From Chrysemys picta bellii (lineage: Eukaryota): 64,000 bases of DNA. The notes under the pieces were generated by a model that saw only the letters and a program-made list of their open reading frames with translations, did no database searches and was not told the origin of the DNA. A program made the position numbers and the translations under genes. Shown here in pieces: positions 48,975-54,100 of this stretch. The stretch's first letter is position 1, and the number at the start of each line of letters is the position of its first letter. The stretch spans positions 30,690,001-30,754,000 of the forward strand of contig NC_088806.1 of the NCBI RefSeq assembly GCF_011386835.1, written 5' to 3'.

Positions 48975-49304
48975 TCAGGCCTGGCTCTCAGCCAGGTCCC
49001 TGACCGTCCCCACGAGCACCCTCACCTCCTCCGCTCCCTTCAGGTCGTGCTGCCCGTCCTTGAACAGCGTGAGGCGGACATCCTGGCTCTCCAGCTGCTC
49101 CGCCACCTGCACGGCCGTGCCCCACGGTACGAGCTGGTCCTGCATGCCGTGCAGCAGCCGGACGGGGCAGGTGATGGGGATGGACGGGCGCCCCAGCACA
49201 CTGTGCTTCTCCGCCTCCGTAAAGAACTCCCGCTTAAGTAGCGCAGACCTGGCCCCAGCCATCACGTAGTTAAAGACTCCCGTCTGCTCCACTTCGCCCT
49301 TCAC
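48975..49304 (-). CDS. ABHD10-like last exon (catalytic Asp and His)
   Basis: VKGEVEQTG...[19 protein letters not shown]...[11 protein letters not shown]...LAESQA-TGA. Confidence 0.92.
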
Positions 49305-51163
49305 CTACCCCCCAAGGGCAGAAAATGCACAGGCCAGTCGGTACCAGCTTTGGGATCAGGGAGATGCGATTGGCCCGACAAGCTACACAAAACCCTGGGC
49401 TGTCAGGGGACCCCACCCCCCTAATTCCACGAGCCCCTTTCTGGTTCTGACCAGGGTGGGAGGGGAGAGACTCCAGACAGATCAGCAGCAGCCTGGATCT
49501 TCCCCTCCCTTCCCCTGTCTGGACGGGCAATCGCTTGATCCCCCCCATGCCTGGGGGCTCACTGGGAGCAGGGGCACCAGGAGAGATTTCTTGGGCTCAG
49601 TGAGAAATACGTCCCTAGGGAGAGCACAGTCACTGGGAGGACCCACAGTCTGGGCCTGGCGTCTGTTTCCCTGCTCAGCAGGGACAGAGCTGAGACCAGG
49701 TGCATTTGCTTCCCAGCCGGTTTCTGGCAGTGCTCACATCCCAGGGGGCGACTCTAGGCATTTATTCCCAGTGGCGGGTTAATGAATACAACCCCTTCCC
49801 CCGTTTCCCCCAGCACACGGGGCCCAGGGCCTTTCCCATGCTGAACACATCATGCGCTGGACTCAGTCTTACCTCCAGAGGAATCTCTCTGTACTTGGTT
49901 ATGAAGATATCAGCCCCGATTGCTGTAGCCACCAGCCCAGCCACCCTCCCTGGCCGCTCCAGGGCTGCTAAGAGCATGAGCCAGCCTCCCATGCTGACAC
50001 CAACAAGGATCTAGAGCGATGGAGACAGGGAACGGTCAGAGAGAGGGGCACTGCCCAGCGGGCGGCCTTTGCCTCATCCATCCCTCTGCCCTGGGTGTGC
50101 TCTCCTACAGCCCAGCCGAGCGCTACTGTGAATCTGCTGCTCAGGGGGCACCAAGGGGTTTGAAGAGCCCTGTTGGGCAAAGCTTCCCCGCCCACGAGAA
50201 CCCCTGGGGCCTGCACCCCAGCAGGCAAAGCCCTTTGCACCGACCCAGAGGCAGGAGGGGCTGCTGGCTTTGCCTCTTACCTGTGGCCCGCTGGTGAGTT
50301 CATCCAGCACCGTTAGGACATCGTTTTTCCAGTGGCCGATCAAACACTCCTCAAAACACCCGTCCGAGCTGCCGCAGCCCGTGTAGTCAAAGCTGAGAGG
50401 GCAAAGGTGCAGAGCCGTTGTTCAGGCGGGACAGTCCCCCACCTCCCCCTTGCGTGGAGATCCCTTTGCCCCCAGCAGCTCACTAGCTCTACTCCCAGGC
50501 CCTGCTTTGCCTGCCCAGAGCCCACGGCTCTGGCTGCAGGAGGGAATTCCTGCTCTACGCACCATCAGGGCAGCGTTCCCTTTGCTGGCCCTCGCTCCGC
50601 AGGTAGACACAGGCCTTGCTTTGAACACGGGGGGACGCAGAGAGAGGAATGGGCAGGGAAGCAGCGCAGGAGACAACCCGGGCTAGTGCGGGGAGGGATG
50701 TCAGAGGGGTGTTGAGCCCCGCTGGGGAAGGGAGCATGCCTGGGTGGGGCCATGCTGGAGACAAGAATGAGTGGAGGGGGAGGCCCCGCGTCCAGCTCCT
50801 GTGCAAGCAGGACACGTGCCGAGAGCCCATTCCTGGCAGGGCCGGAGGCTGCACTGACTGATGCTCAAGGACGCAAAGTCCTGTGATCTCTGGCCCAAGG
50901 GCTGGAGCTCCTAGCTGGCGGCTGCTGTTCTGAATGACTCTGGCCATTCCCCATGGGCTGCCCCATTGGCATCAACGGGCCATCACCTACCTCAGGAAAG
51001 CCCGTCCCGACTCCTGGCAGAACTGCTCCAGGGCCAGGCACTTGGGGTTCGCCCTGGTGTCCTGGAATCCCGAGAGGAAGACGATGCCGGGGCTGCTACC
51101 AGCCAGCCTGTGGTAAGCCAAGCGGGGCAGGGCTCCCCGTGACAAGAACAAAGGTGATGCCAT
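48975..51163 (-). CDS. ABHD10-like alpha/beta hydrolase (palmitoyl-protein thioesterase / acyl-glucuronide esterase family), 250 aa from the Kozak ATG
   Basis: complement(join(48975..49304,49873..50010,50281..50392,50991..51163)); GT-AG introns, 753 nt with no frameshift. Motifs: [29 protein letters not shown], nucleophile elbow [14 protein letters not shown] (Asp) and DGQH (His). The 112-nt and 138-nt exons match recalled human ABHD10 exon sizes. Confidence 0.9.
49873..50010 (-). CDS. ABHD10-like exon (catalytic Ser)
   Basis: [46 protein letters not shown]; donor GTAAGA. Confidence 0.92.
50281..50392 (-). CDS. ABHD10-like exon (FDY)
   Basis: [37 protein letters not shown]; donor GTAAGA. 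Confidence 0.92.
50991..51163 (-). CDS. ABHD10-like exon with start ATG (acceptor at 51186-51187, exon begins 51185)
   Basis: ccccaccATGg; [57 protein letters not shown]; donor GTAGGT. Confidence 0.85.
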
Positions 51164-54100
51164 GGTGGGGCTGGGGAGTGCGGCCCTGCCGGGGGGACAG
51201 AGACGGAGGTGTTACCCATGTGTCTAGCAGCTGCCAGCAGCAGCAGAGCCATCCCACATTGGGGGGGCACAGTCTGGCCACCCCAATGCAGAGGGTGTGG
51301 GGGTCCCGGCATGGACCTGTGGGCACCCTCCCCCACTCACAGCACTTCCATCCTGCTCATGAACCACCATGTGGGGGGTCCCAGTGCCGGCTTGGCCGGA
51401 GGCCACCAGGAGAGGGGATGGCTGGAGGCCAGGCCAGGTTTGGGTCGGGCCCTAGTAAGCGGCTGGAAAGCAGCCATCTGGCCCAGTGGGTTTTGGCAAG
51501 GGCTGCCTGCTGCTGTCACCCCCTGGGCCGGACCCCCAGCCAGAGGGACCTTTCTCAGAGCAGGGGCCAGCAGTGGGAGATAGCAGCGGTCATGCAGGGG
51601 AGGGGGAGCCTTGCTGAGACCAGCTCCTGGCCAGCACGGCAGCCCGAGACTCACGGTGGTTTTGTTCCAGTGGGGGCAGAGGCCGTGTCTCACCGCCGGC
51701 CCTACAGCCAGAACATGCAGCTTTTGCGGAGCTCGGTGAGTTCTTTTCCTCCTGTTCCTGGGCGGCTCAGTGTCTTGGCACGGCTGGAAGCACTGAGGTG
51801 CCCTGGAAGAGAGATGCACCCAGCCTGCCTGTGCGCATGCATGGCTCCAGGCCATGGCTGGCTTTCACCATGGTGGACCTTGCCCTCCAGGACTTGGGGT
51901 GGGGTGTGCAGCGGACGGTGTTGACACAGCCCCAAGCCTGCAGCAGACATTGCCTCCACATCATCGCTGCTAAAGAGGTGGGTTTCTACACCCACCTACA
52001 GCTGGGCAGGGGGCTCCAGGGTTACAGTGCACTAACAGCTACCTGGCCGTGTCCCCACGAGGCCTTTGCAGTGAGATACCGCACGGTCGTTATCCTGCTG
52101 TAATCCCCTCTCCCCCTACCCCCCAGACAGCAAAGACACGGCCTCCCTGTGGCGAAAAGGAAGGTACATTGTGCAGCCATGGCCTTGTACCCCTTGCTGG
52201 TTATTTTGGGGGTAGCTGTGTGGGGTGAATGGGATGCTAACGAGCTTAGCTACATTTGTGCATCCCACGGGTTACAGAGCAGGGGCTCCAGCCATTTCAC
52301 TCCACAGGGCACTTGCTGCAAGAGCCCCTCCCCTCCCAACACTGCAGGGTTGTCAGCTTCCTTGTGCAGCCCCCTGAGGGAGAGACTGTGAGGAACCGGC
52401 CCCCAGGGGCACAGACGTGTCCCACACGTGCACGCTCTCCCTGAGAGCCTGGGCACAAGTACTGCATGGCCTGCAGAGCAGGTGCATTCCCTGCACTTAG
52501 CTCAGTGCTCCTGAGGGGATGGAGGGGACCTCCCAGCTGAAAATGGCCCAGCTCAGATGTGGGGGATCCCTATTCGCCCACCTGGCAACCATTGGCTTGA
52601 GACCAGCCGGGCCCCAGCGTGATCCAGGGCTGGCCGGCCAGTCAGCTAACCACACGGCAGCCCAGCACCTCTCTCTGTGAGCAGCCCTGAGCGAGCGACC
52701 TCAAAGGGGAGCTTTATCTCAGCAGCTGCCAGGCGCTGACCTGCCCCCCACCCCAGCCTGGTCCCCCCTCCAGGGGAACCACATTGAAGAGGTTGCTTGA
52801 CCTAGGCTAGGACCTGGGGGAGTAGGAAGCAGACGAGCAGCAAATGAAGCAGACAGGGTTGGAGGCACCGCAGGCAGAAGTACCCAGGAACCGGGCTCCC
52901 CTGCTGCAGAGGGAGGGACAGCCCCGTGCTTGGTAACCCAGCCCCCACTCCTGCCTTGCAGGGCAGCGGGGCTAGCAGTGGGGGGGGTTTATACCAGATA
53001 TGCTCAAGGCGGACAGCTGAGAGCAGCAGGGACTCAGGTGGCCAAAGCACCTCTGTCTCCCGCTGAGCACTGCCCAGCTCTGCACACGCACGCACTCACC
53101 CCAGGCTTTGGCTGCAAAGCCTTCAGGCAGAGAGCCTGGCAGCTCTACTTCACCCCCTTCTAACTCCAGGGCAGGCCAGCTCGCTTGTCCTGCCCAAGAT
53201 GCATGGCACCAGGACAACCGGAGATGGGGCACCAGCCCCTAGGGCTCTCTGGGGAGAAAGGCTTGCAGGAGAACAAGGCTGGCCGTTCCGATGCCACGAG
53301 CAAGCCCTGATCCCAGACATGGCACTGGGCAGGTCCCAGGGCTGAGGCTTCTCCAAGGCTGCTCAAGGAAGAAAAGCTCCATGTTACTGAGAAAGACCAA
53401 TTGGCAGCTCTGCTACAGCGTCATTGTCTGAGGTTAGGAATCACTTCCCCTCTCTGGGCCCCGGCTGTGAAATGGGACTGCTGGTAACGGCCCCGCTGCA
53501 TAGAGTGCTTGGAGAGCTACAAGAGGTGGTTATTGATTATTACCCATGTCTATACTCAACCCAGACTCCTACTCCCCATCTTCCTTCACTAACTCTCCAC
53601 ACACCCCATCCATACCCAGCCCCGATCCACACACAGTCTGTGTCTACCTCCAGCCATTCCTCCACCAACCCTCTTACCCATTGGCTCCACACCTGTTCCT
53701 ACTTACACACCTGCTCCCAACCACTGCATTCTATACACCACTTTCCTCTGCTCACTCACCTGCTCTCAATAAACTTCCCACCTCCACATCCCCGCCCCTT
53801 CCTCATCAGCCAACCACCATGGAGCAGTCCTTATAAAACAACTCTCCAATGCTCCTTTCTTCTATTTAAGTGGTCTTAGTGAGTGTTGTCTAGCAGTCTA
53901 GTGAAGAGTAGGCTATATACATTAATAGTATGGGAAGAAGGGATAGTCTAAGAGTTAGGGTTTGGTAAAGGAGAAACTAGAGTTAACTTTAGTTCCAGGT
54001 ATAGAGCAAGGCCACATAACTATAAATAGCATCTTGTGTGTATGTGCAGCACCTGGTAGCCCAGAGCAGTTGGTGAGCTTTGCATAGCAGGGAAATGCAG

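Follow-up and report, generated by a model that had tools for sequence, protein, structure and literature searches.

The minus strand of the window, by which we mean the whole 64,000-nucleotide stretch of Chrysemys picta bellii DNA analyzed here, carries a gene of the ABHD10 type close to SIDT2, and the locus raises the question of how this gene is related to the known ABHD10. Canonical ABHD10 is a palmitoyl-protein thioesterase that also goes by the name mycophenolic acid acyl-glucuronide esterase. In mitochondria it depalmitoylates PRDX5 (Cao et al. 2019, as summarized in PMC13625376).

The ABHD10-like gene (48975-51163, minus strand) consists of four coding exons separated by GT-AG introns, with a CDS of 753 nt, or 250 codons and a stop (Table 1). 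RNA contigs with its joints come from two organisms, two studies and four runs and are unstranded; in the four runs the coding joints fall exactly at 49304/49873, 50010/50281 and 50392/50991 (CT..AC on the plus strand). An earlier note on this DNA had described an intact four-exon gene with canonical splice sites, a 250-codon frame and a Ser-Asp-His triad, and both the sequence and the RNA joints confirm this description. The span given there, 48975-51185, is correct in that 51185 is the acceptor edge of exon 1 (acceptor AG at 51187-86), but the positions 51185-51164 are 5' UTR, coding begins at the ATG at 51163, and further non-coding 5' exons lie upstream. The coding part of exon 1 extends from 51163 to 50991 (57 codons and 2 nt) and is followed by the donor GT at 50990. 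The three coding introns occupy protein positions common to the canonical ABHD10 of flamingo and the ABHD10-like copies of chimaera, lizard and Emydura. Because the coding introns are at canonical ABHD10 positions, the gene is not a retrocopy, in agreement with the note; the three coding introns and one 5' UTR intron, all with matching RNA joints, rule out that origin. The conceptual protein is identical to RefSeq XP_065425191.1, the Chrysemys picta bellii "ABHD10, mitochondrial-like isoform X1", and the gene is therefore already annotated in RefSeq. The note had taken it to be probably uncharacterized in function, which still applies to the literature, where our search found no paper treating ABHD10-like as a distinct paralog.

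Table 1. Coordinates of the ABHD10-like gene and its neighbors in the window
Feature	Position	Strand	Details
ABHD10-like alternative non-coding 5' exon	53100..53540	-	Joint 51185/53100 in run X1; edge 53100 firm, upper edge approximate
ABHD10-like non-coding 5' exon 0	51655..51802	-	Joint 51185/51655 in runs X2, X3 and X5; upper edge approximate
ABHD10-like exon 1	50991..51185	-	Sequence; RNA joints 50392/50991 and 51185/51655 or 51185/53100
ABHD10-like exon 2	50281..50392	-	112 nt; encoded peptide ends LTSGPQ; RNA joints 50010/50281 and 50392/50991 in 4/4 runs
ABHD10-like exon 3	49873..50010	-	138 nt, 46 codons; nucleophile elbow GVSMG; skippable
ABHD10-like exon 4, coding part	48975..49304	-	109 codons and TGA; carries Asp197 and His227
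ABHD10-like 3' UTR (putative), at least 1 kb	47919..48974	-	Single RNA contig of run X1, unbroken from 49306 to 47919
SIDT2	21924..45370	+	PDB matches of exon 1 are to SIDT2 chains only; C-terminus recognized
PAFAH1B2 exon	within stop-free stretch 8804..9076	+	Best PDB match PAF acetylhydrolase IB beta subunit, 1.6e-19, versus gamma, 2.1e-14
Putative 3' part of non-coding TAGLN exon 1	51655..51735	+	Antisense to exon 0; donor GTGAGT at 51736

Both variants of the 5' end contain in-frame stops upstream of the ATG (in exon 0, a TGA). Exon 0 is bounded by a donor GTGAGT at 51654 and an acceptor AG at 51804-03, and its region is 80% conserved in Pangshura. On the other side of the gene, the contigs being unstranded, we can only infer that the segment following the stop codon belongs to the ABHD10-like 3' UTR. 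Minus-strand AATAAA signals are located at 46933 and 46925, and the 3' UTRs of ABHD10-like and the convergent SIDT2 probably overlap. An in-frame isoform skips exon 3, the exon with the catalytic serine, as seen from an RNA joint at 49304/50281 and from RefSeq isoform X2. This Ser-less form, in which the turtle gene differs from canonical ABHD10, is annotated from salamander to turtle; it is abundant in some samples and in some runs is as plentiful as the full form.

All named database relatives of the turtle protein are ABHD10 or ABHD10-like. Exon 3 matches the Pfam families Abhydrolase_1 and Hydrolase_4, under the curated cut-offs in both cases. When exon 4 alone is compared with solved structures, the best match is mouse ABHD10 (6NY9, E = 1.7e-19; next 2.5e-8), and the full-length Trachemys orthologue likewise finds ABHD10 over residues 5-247 (E = 6.3e-71; next 3.7e-27). 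A Foldseek search with the AlphaFold model of the window protein (pLDDT 94.5, pTM 0.92) again places 6NY9 on top (E = 7.9e-35, TM 0.93, rmsd 1.8 Å), followed by a bacterial hydrolase at 1.6e-24; identity with canonical ABHD10 is 44-47%. As modeled, the turtle protein has an alpha/beta-hydrolase core with a helical cap, the complete ABHD10 fold. It shares with the canonical enzyme the GxSxG motif and the triad, formed by Ser101 in GVSMG (49995-49993), Asp197 (49139-49137) and His227 (49049-49047). The triad columns are kept throughout the 65 aligned proteins with the sole exception of one lizard with Glu for Asp, and Ser and His are invariant in two further alignments (A1 and A2). Fold and residues together suggest that ABHD10-like would be active as an ABHD10-type serine hydrolase, that is, an acyl-thioesterase or esterase.

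We placed the gene in a maximum-likelihood tree of 65 proteins, rooted on hemichordate, cnidarian and annelid sequences and containing no lamprey or hagfish. In this tree vertebrates are supported at 99/99, a canonical ABHD10 clade at 96/96, and a single ABHD10-like clade at 92/89, which is good, not maximal, support, given alongside long outgroup branches. The canonical clade includes turtle, bird, mammal, amphibian and shark proteins together with all ray-finned a and b copies, while the ABHD10-like clade comprises sharks, rays, chimaera, coelacanth, lungfish, salamanders, squamates and turtles and branches internally in agreement with the species phylogeny. The turtle gene falls outside the canonical clade and so is not an orthologue of human and mouse ABHD10. 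A FastTree analysis of 159 proteins resolved the like-type sequences as four basal groups instead of one clade, none of them nested in canonical ABHD10. In the maximum-likelihood tree, cartilaginous fishes and lobe-finned vertebrates occur in both clades and the outgroups root between the two. The duplication is thereby placed later than the divergence from invertebrates but earlier than that of sharks and bony vertebrates, which separates the two genes before the gnathostome radiation. A recent duplication in turtles, considered in the earlier note, is refuted by the grouping with shark, coelacanth, lungfish, salamander and squamate ABHD10-like proteins; enforcing an all-turtle clade costs 146.8 lnL (AU test, p = 1.6e-109).

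The loci named "ABHD10, mitochondrial-like" by RefSeq in sharks, rays, chimaera, coelacanth, lungfish, axolotl, lizards and turtles are orthologues of the turtle gene in the same clade. They encode the same presequence-less form of 250-260 aa, have a SID-1 gene as neighbor where checked, and show no biological difference from it. Searches of annotated proteins, on which the absences rest, as opposed to genomes, returned no like-clade member from birds, mammals, crocodilians, frogs, caecilians or ray-finned fishes. Teleost abhd10a and abhd10b present a similar situation, with two ABHD10 genes per genome, one of which is called "b" or "-like" by annotation pipelines, but they are not the counterpart of the turtle gene, as both copies are canonical in the maximum-likelihood tree. 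They differ from the turtle gene, as do the single copies of Amia and Acipenser, in belonging to the canonical clade and in having N-terminal extensions of 18-38 residues, mostly basic and presequence-like except in the Amia and Clarias models. The "b" proteins of Polypterus and Lepisosteus rank among canonical proteins by E-value. The teleost pair represents a later duplication in ray-finned fishes and is not orthologous to the turtle gene.

The window covers the PAFAH1B2-SIDT2 region. SIDT2 is convergent with ABHD10-like, its stop (45368-45370) lying 3.6 kb from the ABHD10-like TGA, and the same tail-to-tail arrangement is found in Emydura, Pangshura, Sceloporus and Callorhinchus. The proposed location between SIDT2 and TAGLN is borne out on the SIDT2 side, but TAGLN coding exons are outside the window: neither a search for TAGLN motifs nor tblastn with lizard TAGLN exons found any within the 64 kb. 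An RNA contig of run X5 departs from the window sequence at 51736 and goes on as ...CAGTGAACATGGCAAACA (Met-Ala-Asn-Lys), resembling the Sceloporus TAGLN start ...GGTGACCATGGCGAACAAAGG, and the segment preceding that donor may well be part of TAGLN exon 1. Adjacency of ABHD10-like and TAGLN in the turtle is suggested by this one short overhang and by the lizard locus (Sceloporus), where the like-copy adjoins TAGLN. As the note had anticipated, the turtle gene is not the sole ABHD10 of its genome. Canonical ABHD10 (XP_065430867.1) is on a 360-Mb record that also bears TAGLN3, the two original accessions being consecutive; in turtles the canonical copy sits between a PHLDB2-like gene and TAGLN3. 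The two genes are alike in having a transgelin-family neighbor and differ in their blocks, SIDT2/TAGLN in one case and PHLDB2/TAGLN3 in the other.

The arrangement was probably produced by duplication of a chromosomal block in which ABHD10 and a transgelin gene lay together, at a date preceding the divergence of cartilaginous from bony vertebrates; this timing and the block structure fit the early vertebrate whole-genome duplications (1R/2R). One daughter would have become canonical ABHD10 (PHLDB2 - ABHD10 - TAGLN3) and the other ABHD10-like, tail-to-tail with SIDT2 and head-to-head with TAGLN. The latter retains the ancestral exon-intron layout with a first exon that has ceased coding, and by alignment its protein begins where mature mitochondrial ABHD10 begins. 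The pair could also have arisen by an ancient small-scale duplication in an early vertebrate, segmental or tandem with subsequent translocation. Such an origin draws on the inversion of ABHD10-like relative to TAGLN, compared with the common strand of ABHD10 and TAGLN3, on a neighbor comparison of two to three genes per side, and on a tree free of cyclostomes, which is compatible with 1R, 2R or an older block duplication. We consider it unlikely in view of the fact that the copies adjoin different members of the same families (TAGLN versus TAGLN3), that the like-copy has a SID-1 gene as its neighbor in species ranging from chimaera to turtle, and that the duplication node is within the interval expected for 1R/2R. 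Human 11q23 and 3q13 also share the pairs TAGLN/TAGLN3, SIDT2/SIDT1 and PHLDB1/PHLDB2. Tree and synteny thus favor the retained ohnolog that had been proposed, with 1R as well as 2R as candidate rounds where the note had named 2R, and with a retention that is not specific to turtles.

Another difference from canonical ABHD10 is at the N-terminus. Ahead of the window Met1, the 26 like-clade proteins have 0-19 residues; the 36 canonical proteins have 18-87 there, and three invertebrate ones 23-40. The window protein itself has 0 residues before the mature-protein start and, by alignment, no presequence. Eighteen of the 26 like-clade proteins use the same start Met, and the longer ones have no presequence-like extension. 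Judging from sequence, the N-terminal presequence of canonical and invertebrate proteins is missing from the like clade, and the turtle gene lacks it because its first exon is non-coding. ABHD10-like may be expected to act elsewhere than in the matrix of mitochondria, with the cytosol as the likeliest place, and the "mitochondrial-like" names in RefSeq, which are automatic annotation, would wrongly imply a mitochondrial protein. It seems very unlikely that the protein is still mitochondrial by way of an alternative first exon or a cryptic signal, in which case the paralogs would differ in substrate or tissue. This possibility is raised by the Ensembl/UniProt model A0A8C3I6J0, which prepends 63 Arg-rich residues from an alternative 5' exon, and by the basic character of residues 1-25 of the window protein (three Arg, one His, no acidic residue). 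However, this 63-aa upstream ORF, the only one ever modeled, is not conserved, being interrupted by three stops in Pangshura and lacking a start in Emydura, and the RNA-observed donor at 53100 puts stops in frame ahead of the ATG. The start Met common to most of the clade also argues against mitochondrial import, as do residues 5-30, which are predicted core beta strands and align with the crystallized mature mouse enzyme.

The dN/dS ratio of ABHD10-like is about 0.2-0.4 (0.20-0.41), significantly below 1 (Fisher p from 4e-4 to 6e-12), and pN is significantly lower than pS in every pair compared. By these codon comparisons the gene is under purifying but fairly relaxed selection. In terms of branch length, the rate of the like-copies is about double that of the canonical turtle copies, the amniote stem branch is long, and the amniote copies are altered at residues that are otherwise near-universally conserved, such as Arg58 and Gly123. 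These features, a dN/dS high for a housekeeping enzyme, the abundance of the Ser-less form in some runs and the repeated loss of the gene in other lineages could be read as signs of a relic drifting to loss, transcribed into a protein with no enzymatic role. We regard this as highly improbable, considering that both turtle suborders and the squamates preserve the 250-codon frame, start codon, all splice sites and the triad without damage, in lineages separated by more than 200 million years, that the depression of pN extends to all pairs, and that the model folds with high confidence. Decay, the other alternative weighed at the outset, is contradicted by the dN/dS values and by the splicing and expression of the gene.

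Taken together, these results make it likely that the turtle gene belongs to an old, separate ABHD10-like branch derived from an early block duplication and encodes a presequence-less, probably cytosolic hydrolase. They also lead us to speculate, tentatively and with more doubt than conviction, that ABHD10-like could be the cytosolic counterpart of the mitochondrial depalmitoylase ABHD10, the two having divided the compartments after early genome duplication, with rapid change in amniotes and the addition of a Ser-less isoform. The presequence would then have been lost as the first exon turned into UTR, and the Ser-less form could be a non-catalytic acyl-protein binder or a switch. If this is true, an entire depalmitoylation activity still in use in sharks, lungfish, salamanders and reptiles would have disappeared from mammals, birds, frogs and ray-finned fishes.

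The minus-strand gene beside SIDT2, a paralog of the canonical mitochondrial ABHD10 and hereafter referred to as ABHD10-like, is an intact gene of the ABHD10 type, as the earlier note had observed: its four exons, its 250-codon frame and its catalytic triad were all confirmed, and RNA contigs carry the matching joints. The coordinates of the coding exons and triad residues are collected in the table. Every intron starts with GT and ends with AG, and the joined exons form a coding sequence of 753 nt, that is, 250 codons followed by TGA. The encoded protein is identical over 250 residues to XP_065425191.1 of Chrysemys picta bellii; the gene is therefore already present in RefSeq.

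Coding exons and catalytic triad of the ABHD10-like gene (window positions, read from sequence)
Feature	Position	Strand	Remark
Coding exon 1	51163 to 50991	minus	
Coding exon 2	50392 to 50281	minus	
Coding exon 3	50010 to 49873	minus	bears Ser101
Coding exon 4	49304 to 48975	minus	TGA end
Ser101	49995-49993	minus	in GVSMG
Asp197	49139-49137	minus	in HGMQDQ
His227	49049-49047	minus	in GQHD

Exon-by-exon scans of Pfam and NCBIfam yielded only sub-threshold, generic alpha/beta-hydrolase matches, and a word search with exon 4, restricted to proteins of similar length, returned nothing beyond a 95-aa Terrapene fragment. The family is identified by comparisons with solved structures, where exon 4 alone matches mouse ABHD10 (6NY9) with E 1.7e-19 (next match 2.5e-8) and the Trachemys orthologue aligns with 6NY9 from end to end with E 6.3e-71. 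Among cluster representatives, exon 4 matches turtle proteins at 89-99% identity, and next ABHD10 relatives at no more than 50%. Structure prediction with AlphaFold from an alignment of 57 relatives gave a model with a pLDDT of 94.5, and its best structural match is again 6NY9 (TM 0.93, rmsd 1.8 A). These comparisons show that the ABHD10 fold, the cap and the triad are intact in the ABHD10-like protein, which adds an undescribed protein to a known enzyme family and does not represent a new kind of gene. Our literature search found no paper describing such a paralog or ohnolog of ABHD10, or such a gene under the name "ABHD10-like"; only automatic annotations exist.

Transcription was assessed by comparing Logan contigs of four small runs, three of one study on organism A and one of a second study on organism B, with window positions 47200-53199; the library type of these runs was only guessed to be RNA, and spliced joints are present. 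Their positions are exactly 49304|49873, 50010|50281 and 50392|50991, with CT..AC on the plus strand corresponding to GT..AG on the minus strand, which confirms that the gene is transcribed and spliced exactly as predicted. The contigs also show that exon 1 is internal, with an acceptor at 51187-86, which corresponds to the upper coordinate in the earlier note (51185). In three runs it is preceded by a 5' exon spanning 51655-~51802, and in one run by an alternative 5' exon from 53100 upward. Both 5' variants carry an in-frame stop ahead of the ATG at 51163 with no other ATG in between, so the 250-codon frame stands.

An additional joint, 49304|50281, leaves out exon 3 without shifting the frame, so that 46 codons are lost, Ser101 among them. 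All three organism-A runs contain this joint, with contig depths close to those of the inclusion form, and it matches the 204-aa RefSeq isoform X2. The Ser-less form is annotated in Chrysemys, Trachemys and Caretta, and it is the sole model in Podarcis and Pleurodeles; its conservation may reach from salamanders to turtles. At the 3' end, a single contig extends from exon 4 to 47919 without a break, so the 3' UTR would be at least 1 kb long. RNA contigs span the whole 3.6 kb from the SIDT2 stop to the ABHD10-like stop (45370-48975), and the only poly(A) signals found in this interval are at 47481 (plus strand) and at 46933 and 46925 (minus strand). The 3' UTRs of the two convergent genes probably overlap, judging from contigs that are unstranded.

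The evolutionary origin of the gene was investigated with a tree of 65 proteins (LG+C20+F+G4, ultrafast bootstrap and SH-aLRT, no sequence dropped by the program), comprising the window protein, 61 vertebrate relatives hand-chosen from about 150 matches, and three outgroups (a hemichordate, a cnidarian and an annelid). Vertebrates separate from the outgroups with bootstrap/SH-aLRT support of 99/99. Canonical ABHD10 proteins of sharks, rays, coelacanth, amphibians, mammals, squamates, birds, turtles and ray-finned fishes form one clade (96/96), and ABHD10-like proteins of ten cartilaginous fishes, coelacanth, lungfish, axolotl, squamates and turtles form another (92/89), within which the branching follows the species tree and the window protein is sister to that of Trachemys (96% identity). 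A FastTree of 159 matches resolves the ABHD10-like proteins as four basal groups instead of one clade, with none of them inside canonical ABHD10; we place more weight on the 65-protein mixture-model tree. Both topologies imply that the two types predate the divergence of sharks and bony vertebrates.

A duplication specific to turtles would group the two turtle types together. Forcing a single turtle clade costs 146.8 log-likelihood units (p-AU 1.6e-109), and this scenario is rejected. The reading of the window gene as the sole ABHD10 orthologue is likewise rejected, as canonical ABHD10 is also present in Chrysemys, on a separate 360-Mb record. The interpretation in the earlier note of an old second ABHD10 copy, probably a whole-genome-duplication ohnolog, is supported, with corrections concerning its retention, its teleost counterparts, the position of TAGLN and the round of duplication, which may be 1R or 2R. 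Retention in turtles only is not borne out, given the span of the ABHD10-like clade from cartilaginous fishes to squamates. Nor do teleost abhd10a and abhd10b represent the counterpart of the pair: all ray-finned sequences of the tree, namely teleost a and b, Amia and Acipenser, fall inside the canonical clade, the teleost copies are unrelated to the ABHD10/ABHD10-like split, and orthology to abhd10b is rejected. Searches of annotated proteins with a tortoise protein query and with a profile of 20 ABHD10-like proteins returned no ABHD10-like protein from birds, mammals, crocodilians, frogs, caecilians or ray-finned fishes, which is an absence from annotated proteins and not proof of genomic absence; the canonical proteins of most of these groups did come up in both queries.

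The genomic neighborhood was compared between the two copies. The human SIDT2 and TAGLN genes are same-strand neighbors, as their frequent read-through transcript shows (PMC4085473). In the window, a PAFAH1B2 exon and SIDT2 lie upstream on the plus strand, with the SIDT2 stop at 45370 facing the TGA at 48975, and the same tail-to-tail arrangement with a SID-1-family gene is found in Emydura, Pangshura, Sceloporus and the chimaera Callorhinchus. The other neighbor of the Sceloporus copy, 6.5 kb upstream on the opposite strand, encodes a 201-aa calponin-homology protein, which from its N-terminal sequence we take to be TAGLN. In the window itself, by contrast with the location given in the earlier note, TAGLN coding exons are not present: none were found, either with TAGLN protein motifs or by tblastn with the Sceloporus TAGLN exons.

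A contig from organism B (run X5) leaves the window at a plus-strand GTGAGT donor at 51736 and continues ...CAGTGAACATGGCAAACA, the joined sequence past the donor reading ...ATGGCAAACA, or Met-Ala-Asn-Lys. The 29-nt overhang is absent from the window, and the continuation resembles the start of Sceloporus TAGLN. From the donor and the TAGLN-like continuation we infer a non-coding TAGLN exon 1 ending at 51735. This suggests that the putative exon is antisense to the ABHD10-like 5' exon (51655-51802), and that TAGLN intron 1 would be longer than 12 kb and extend past the window end. The sequence CCAAATATGG at 58784-58793 (plus strand), which would fall in this intron, fits the CArG-box consensus and is the sequence of a CArG box in the mammalian SM22alpha/TAGLN promoter. 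The window contains three CArG boxes (CCWWWWWWGG) compared with 3.45 expected; the count is not above chance and the boxes are not evidence.

Canonical ABHD10 in Mauremys and flamingo is preceded on the same strand by a gene for a 1276-1280-aa PH-domain protein, which is PHLDB2-like by size and domain; TAGLN3 was not reached within the ten-kb flanks of these two loci. The link to TAGLN3 comes from a RefSeq read-through model of Gopherus, in which exon 1 of ABHD10 is spliced to TAGLN3; the two genes are therefore co-oriented, and ABHD10 is the immediate upstream neighbor. The original accessions of the Chrysemys ABHD10 and TAGLN3 are consecutive, both genes belonging to the 360-Mb record, and ABHD10-like is on a 32-Mb record. 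In Gopherus evgoodei, RefSeq fuses ABHD10 and TAGLN3 under the name "transgelin-3", with isoform X1 being plain ABHD10 and X4 exon 1 plus TAGLN3; due to this merger, entries for transgelin-3 and for ABHD10 appear together in one 90% protein cluster.

The two types differ at the N-terminus. Canonical ABHD10 has five coding exons, the first of which encodes the presequence (flamingo). The three downstream introns occupy the same protein positions in canonical ABHD10, in the window gene and in the ABHD10-like copies of chimaera, lizard and Emydura, and the possibility that the gene is a retrocopy is rejected. An intron situated a few codons ahead of the mature start is retained in the window gene, whose upstream exons are non-coding. 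In the alignment, 26 ABHD10-like proteins have 0-19 residues before the window Met1 (none in 18 of the 26), compared with 18-87 in 36 canonical proteins and 23-40 in the three invertebrate outgroups; the canonical extensions are mostly basic and alanine-rich. Based on these lengths and compositions, the presequence is likely to be an ancestral feature that the ABHD10-like lineage lost early. The Ensembl protein A0A8C3I6J0 begins instead at an ATG at 53320 (stretch 53153-53320, minus strand), adding 63 residues from the alternative 5' exon. It depends on a donor absent from the RNA contigs, which have another donor, and the extra frame contains three stops in Pangshura and has no start in Emydura. 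A coding N-terminal extension is rejected because the frame is not conserved and the donor is not in RNA, and this gene model looks wrong.

Selective constraint was measured from per-exon codon alignments of the loci. The dN/dS ratio is 0.26-0.37 between the window gene and Emydura, 0.38-0.41 with Pangshura, 0.20-0.32 with Sceloporus, and 0.24-0.34 between Emydura and Pangshura. Non-synonymous changes are significantly rarer than synonymous ones in the three comparisons that involve the window gene, those with Emydura, Pangshura and Sceloporus (Fisher p 1e-5, 4e-4 and 6e-12). The overall range of 0.20-0.41 indicates purifying selection, and the constraint is real but relaxed. In the 65-protein tree, turtle ABHD10-like copies have evolved about twice as fast as turtle canonical copies by branch length, and a long stem leads to the amniote ABHD10-like copies. 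Replacements on this stem affect the otherwise near-invariant residues Ser35, Ala42, Arg58, Gly123 and Ser205. In window-protein numbering, replacements shared by the amniote ABHD10-like proteins occur at positions 35, 42, 51, 58, 113, 123, 182, 205 and 234, all nine of which are unchanged in more than 80% of fish and salamander ABHD10-like copies and of canonical ABHD10, and most also in the outgroups; examples are Arg58 to Ser and Gly123 to Ala, in addition to a one-residue insertion. The sole position that divides the whole ABHD10-like clade from canonical ABHD10 is 120 (Gly120 versus Ala).

ABHD10 depalmitoylates PRDX5 and further proteins of mitochondria (Cao et al. 2019, cited in the review PMC13625376), and the literature views it as one single depalmitoylase that is specific to mitochondria (PMC13625376). 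By analogy, ABHD10-like would be an active acyl-thioesterase or esterase that may act outside the mitochondrial matrix, and a change of compartment is plausible. Our results show that jawed vertebrates ancestrally possessed two ABHD10 genes, and that the second, without a mitochondrial leader, persists in squamates and in several other lineages, many of which evolve slowly. The value of this is incremental, as genes lost in mammals and kept in reptiles and sharks are common. The results correct the misleading database name "mitochondrial-like" and add a marker to the 3q13/11q23 paralogon, and the ABHD10 pair constitutes a natural experiment in the evolution of compartment-specific lipid-removing enzymes after genome duplication.
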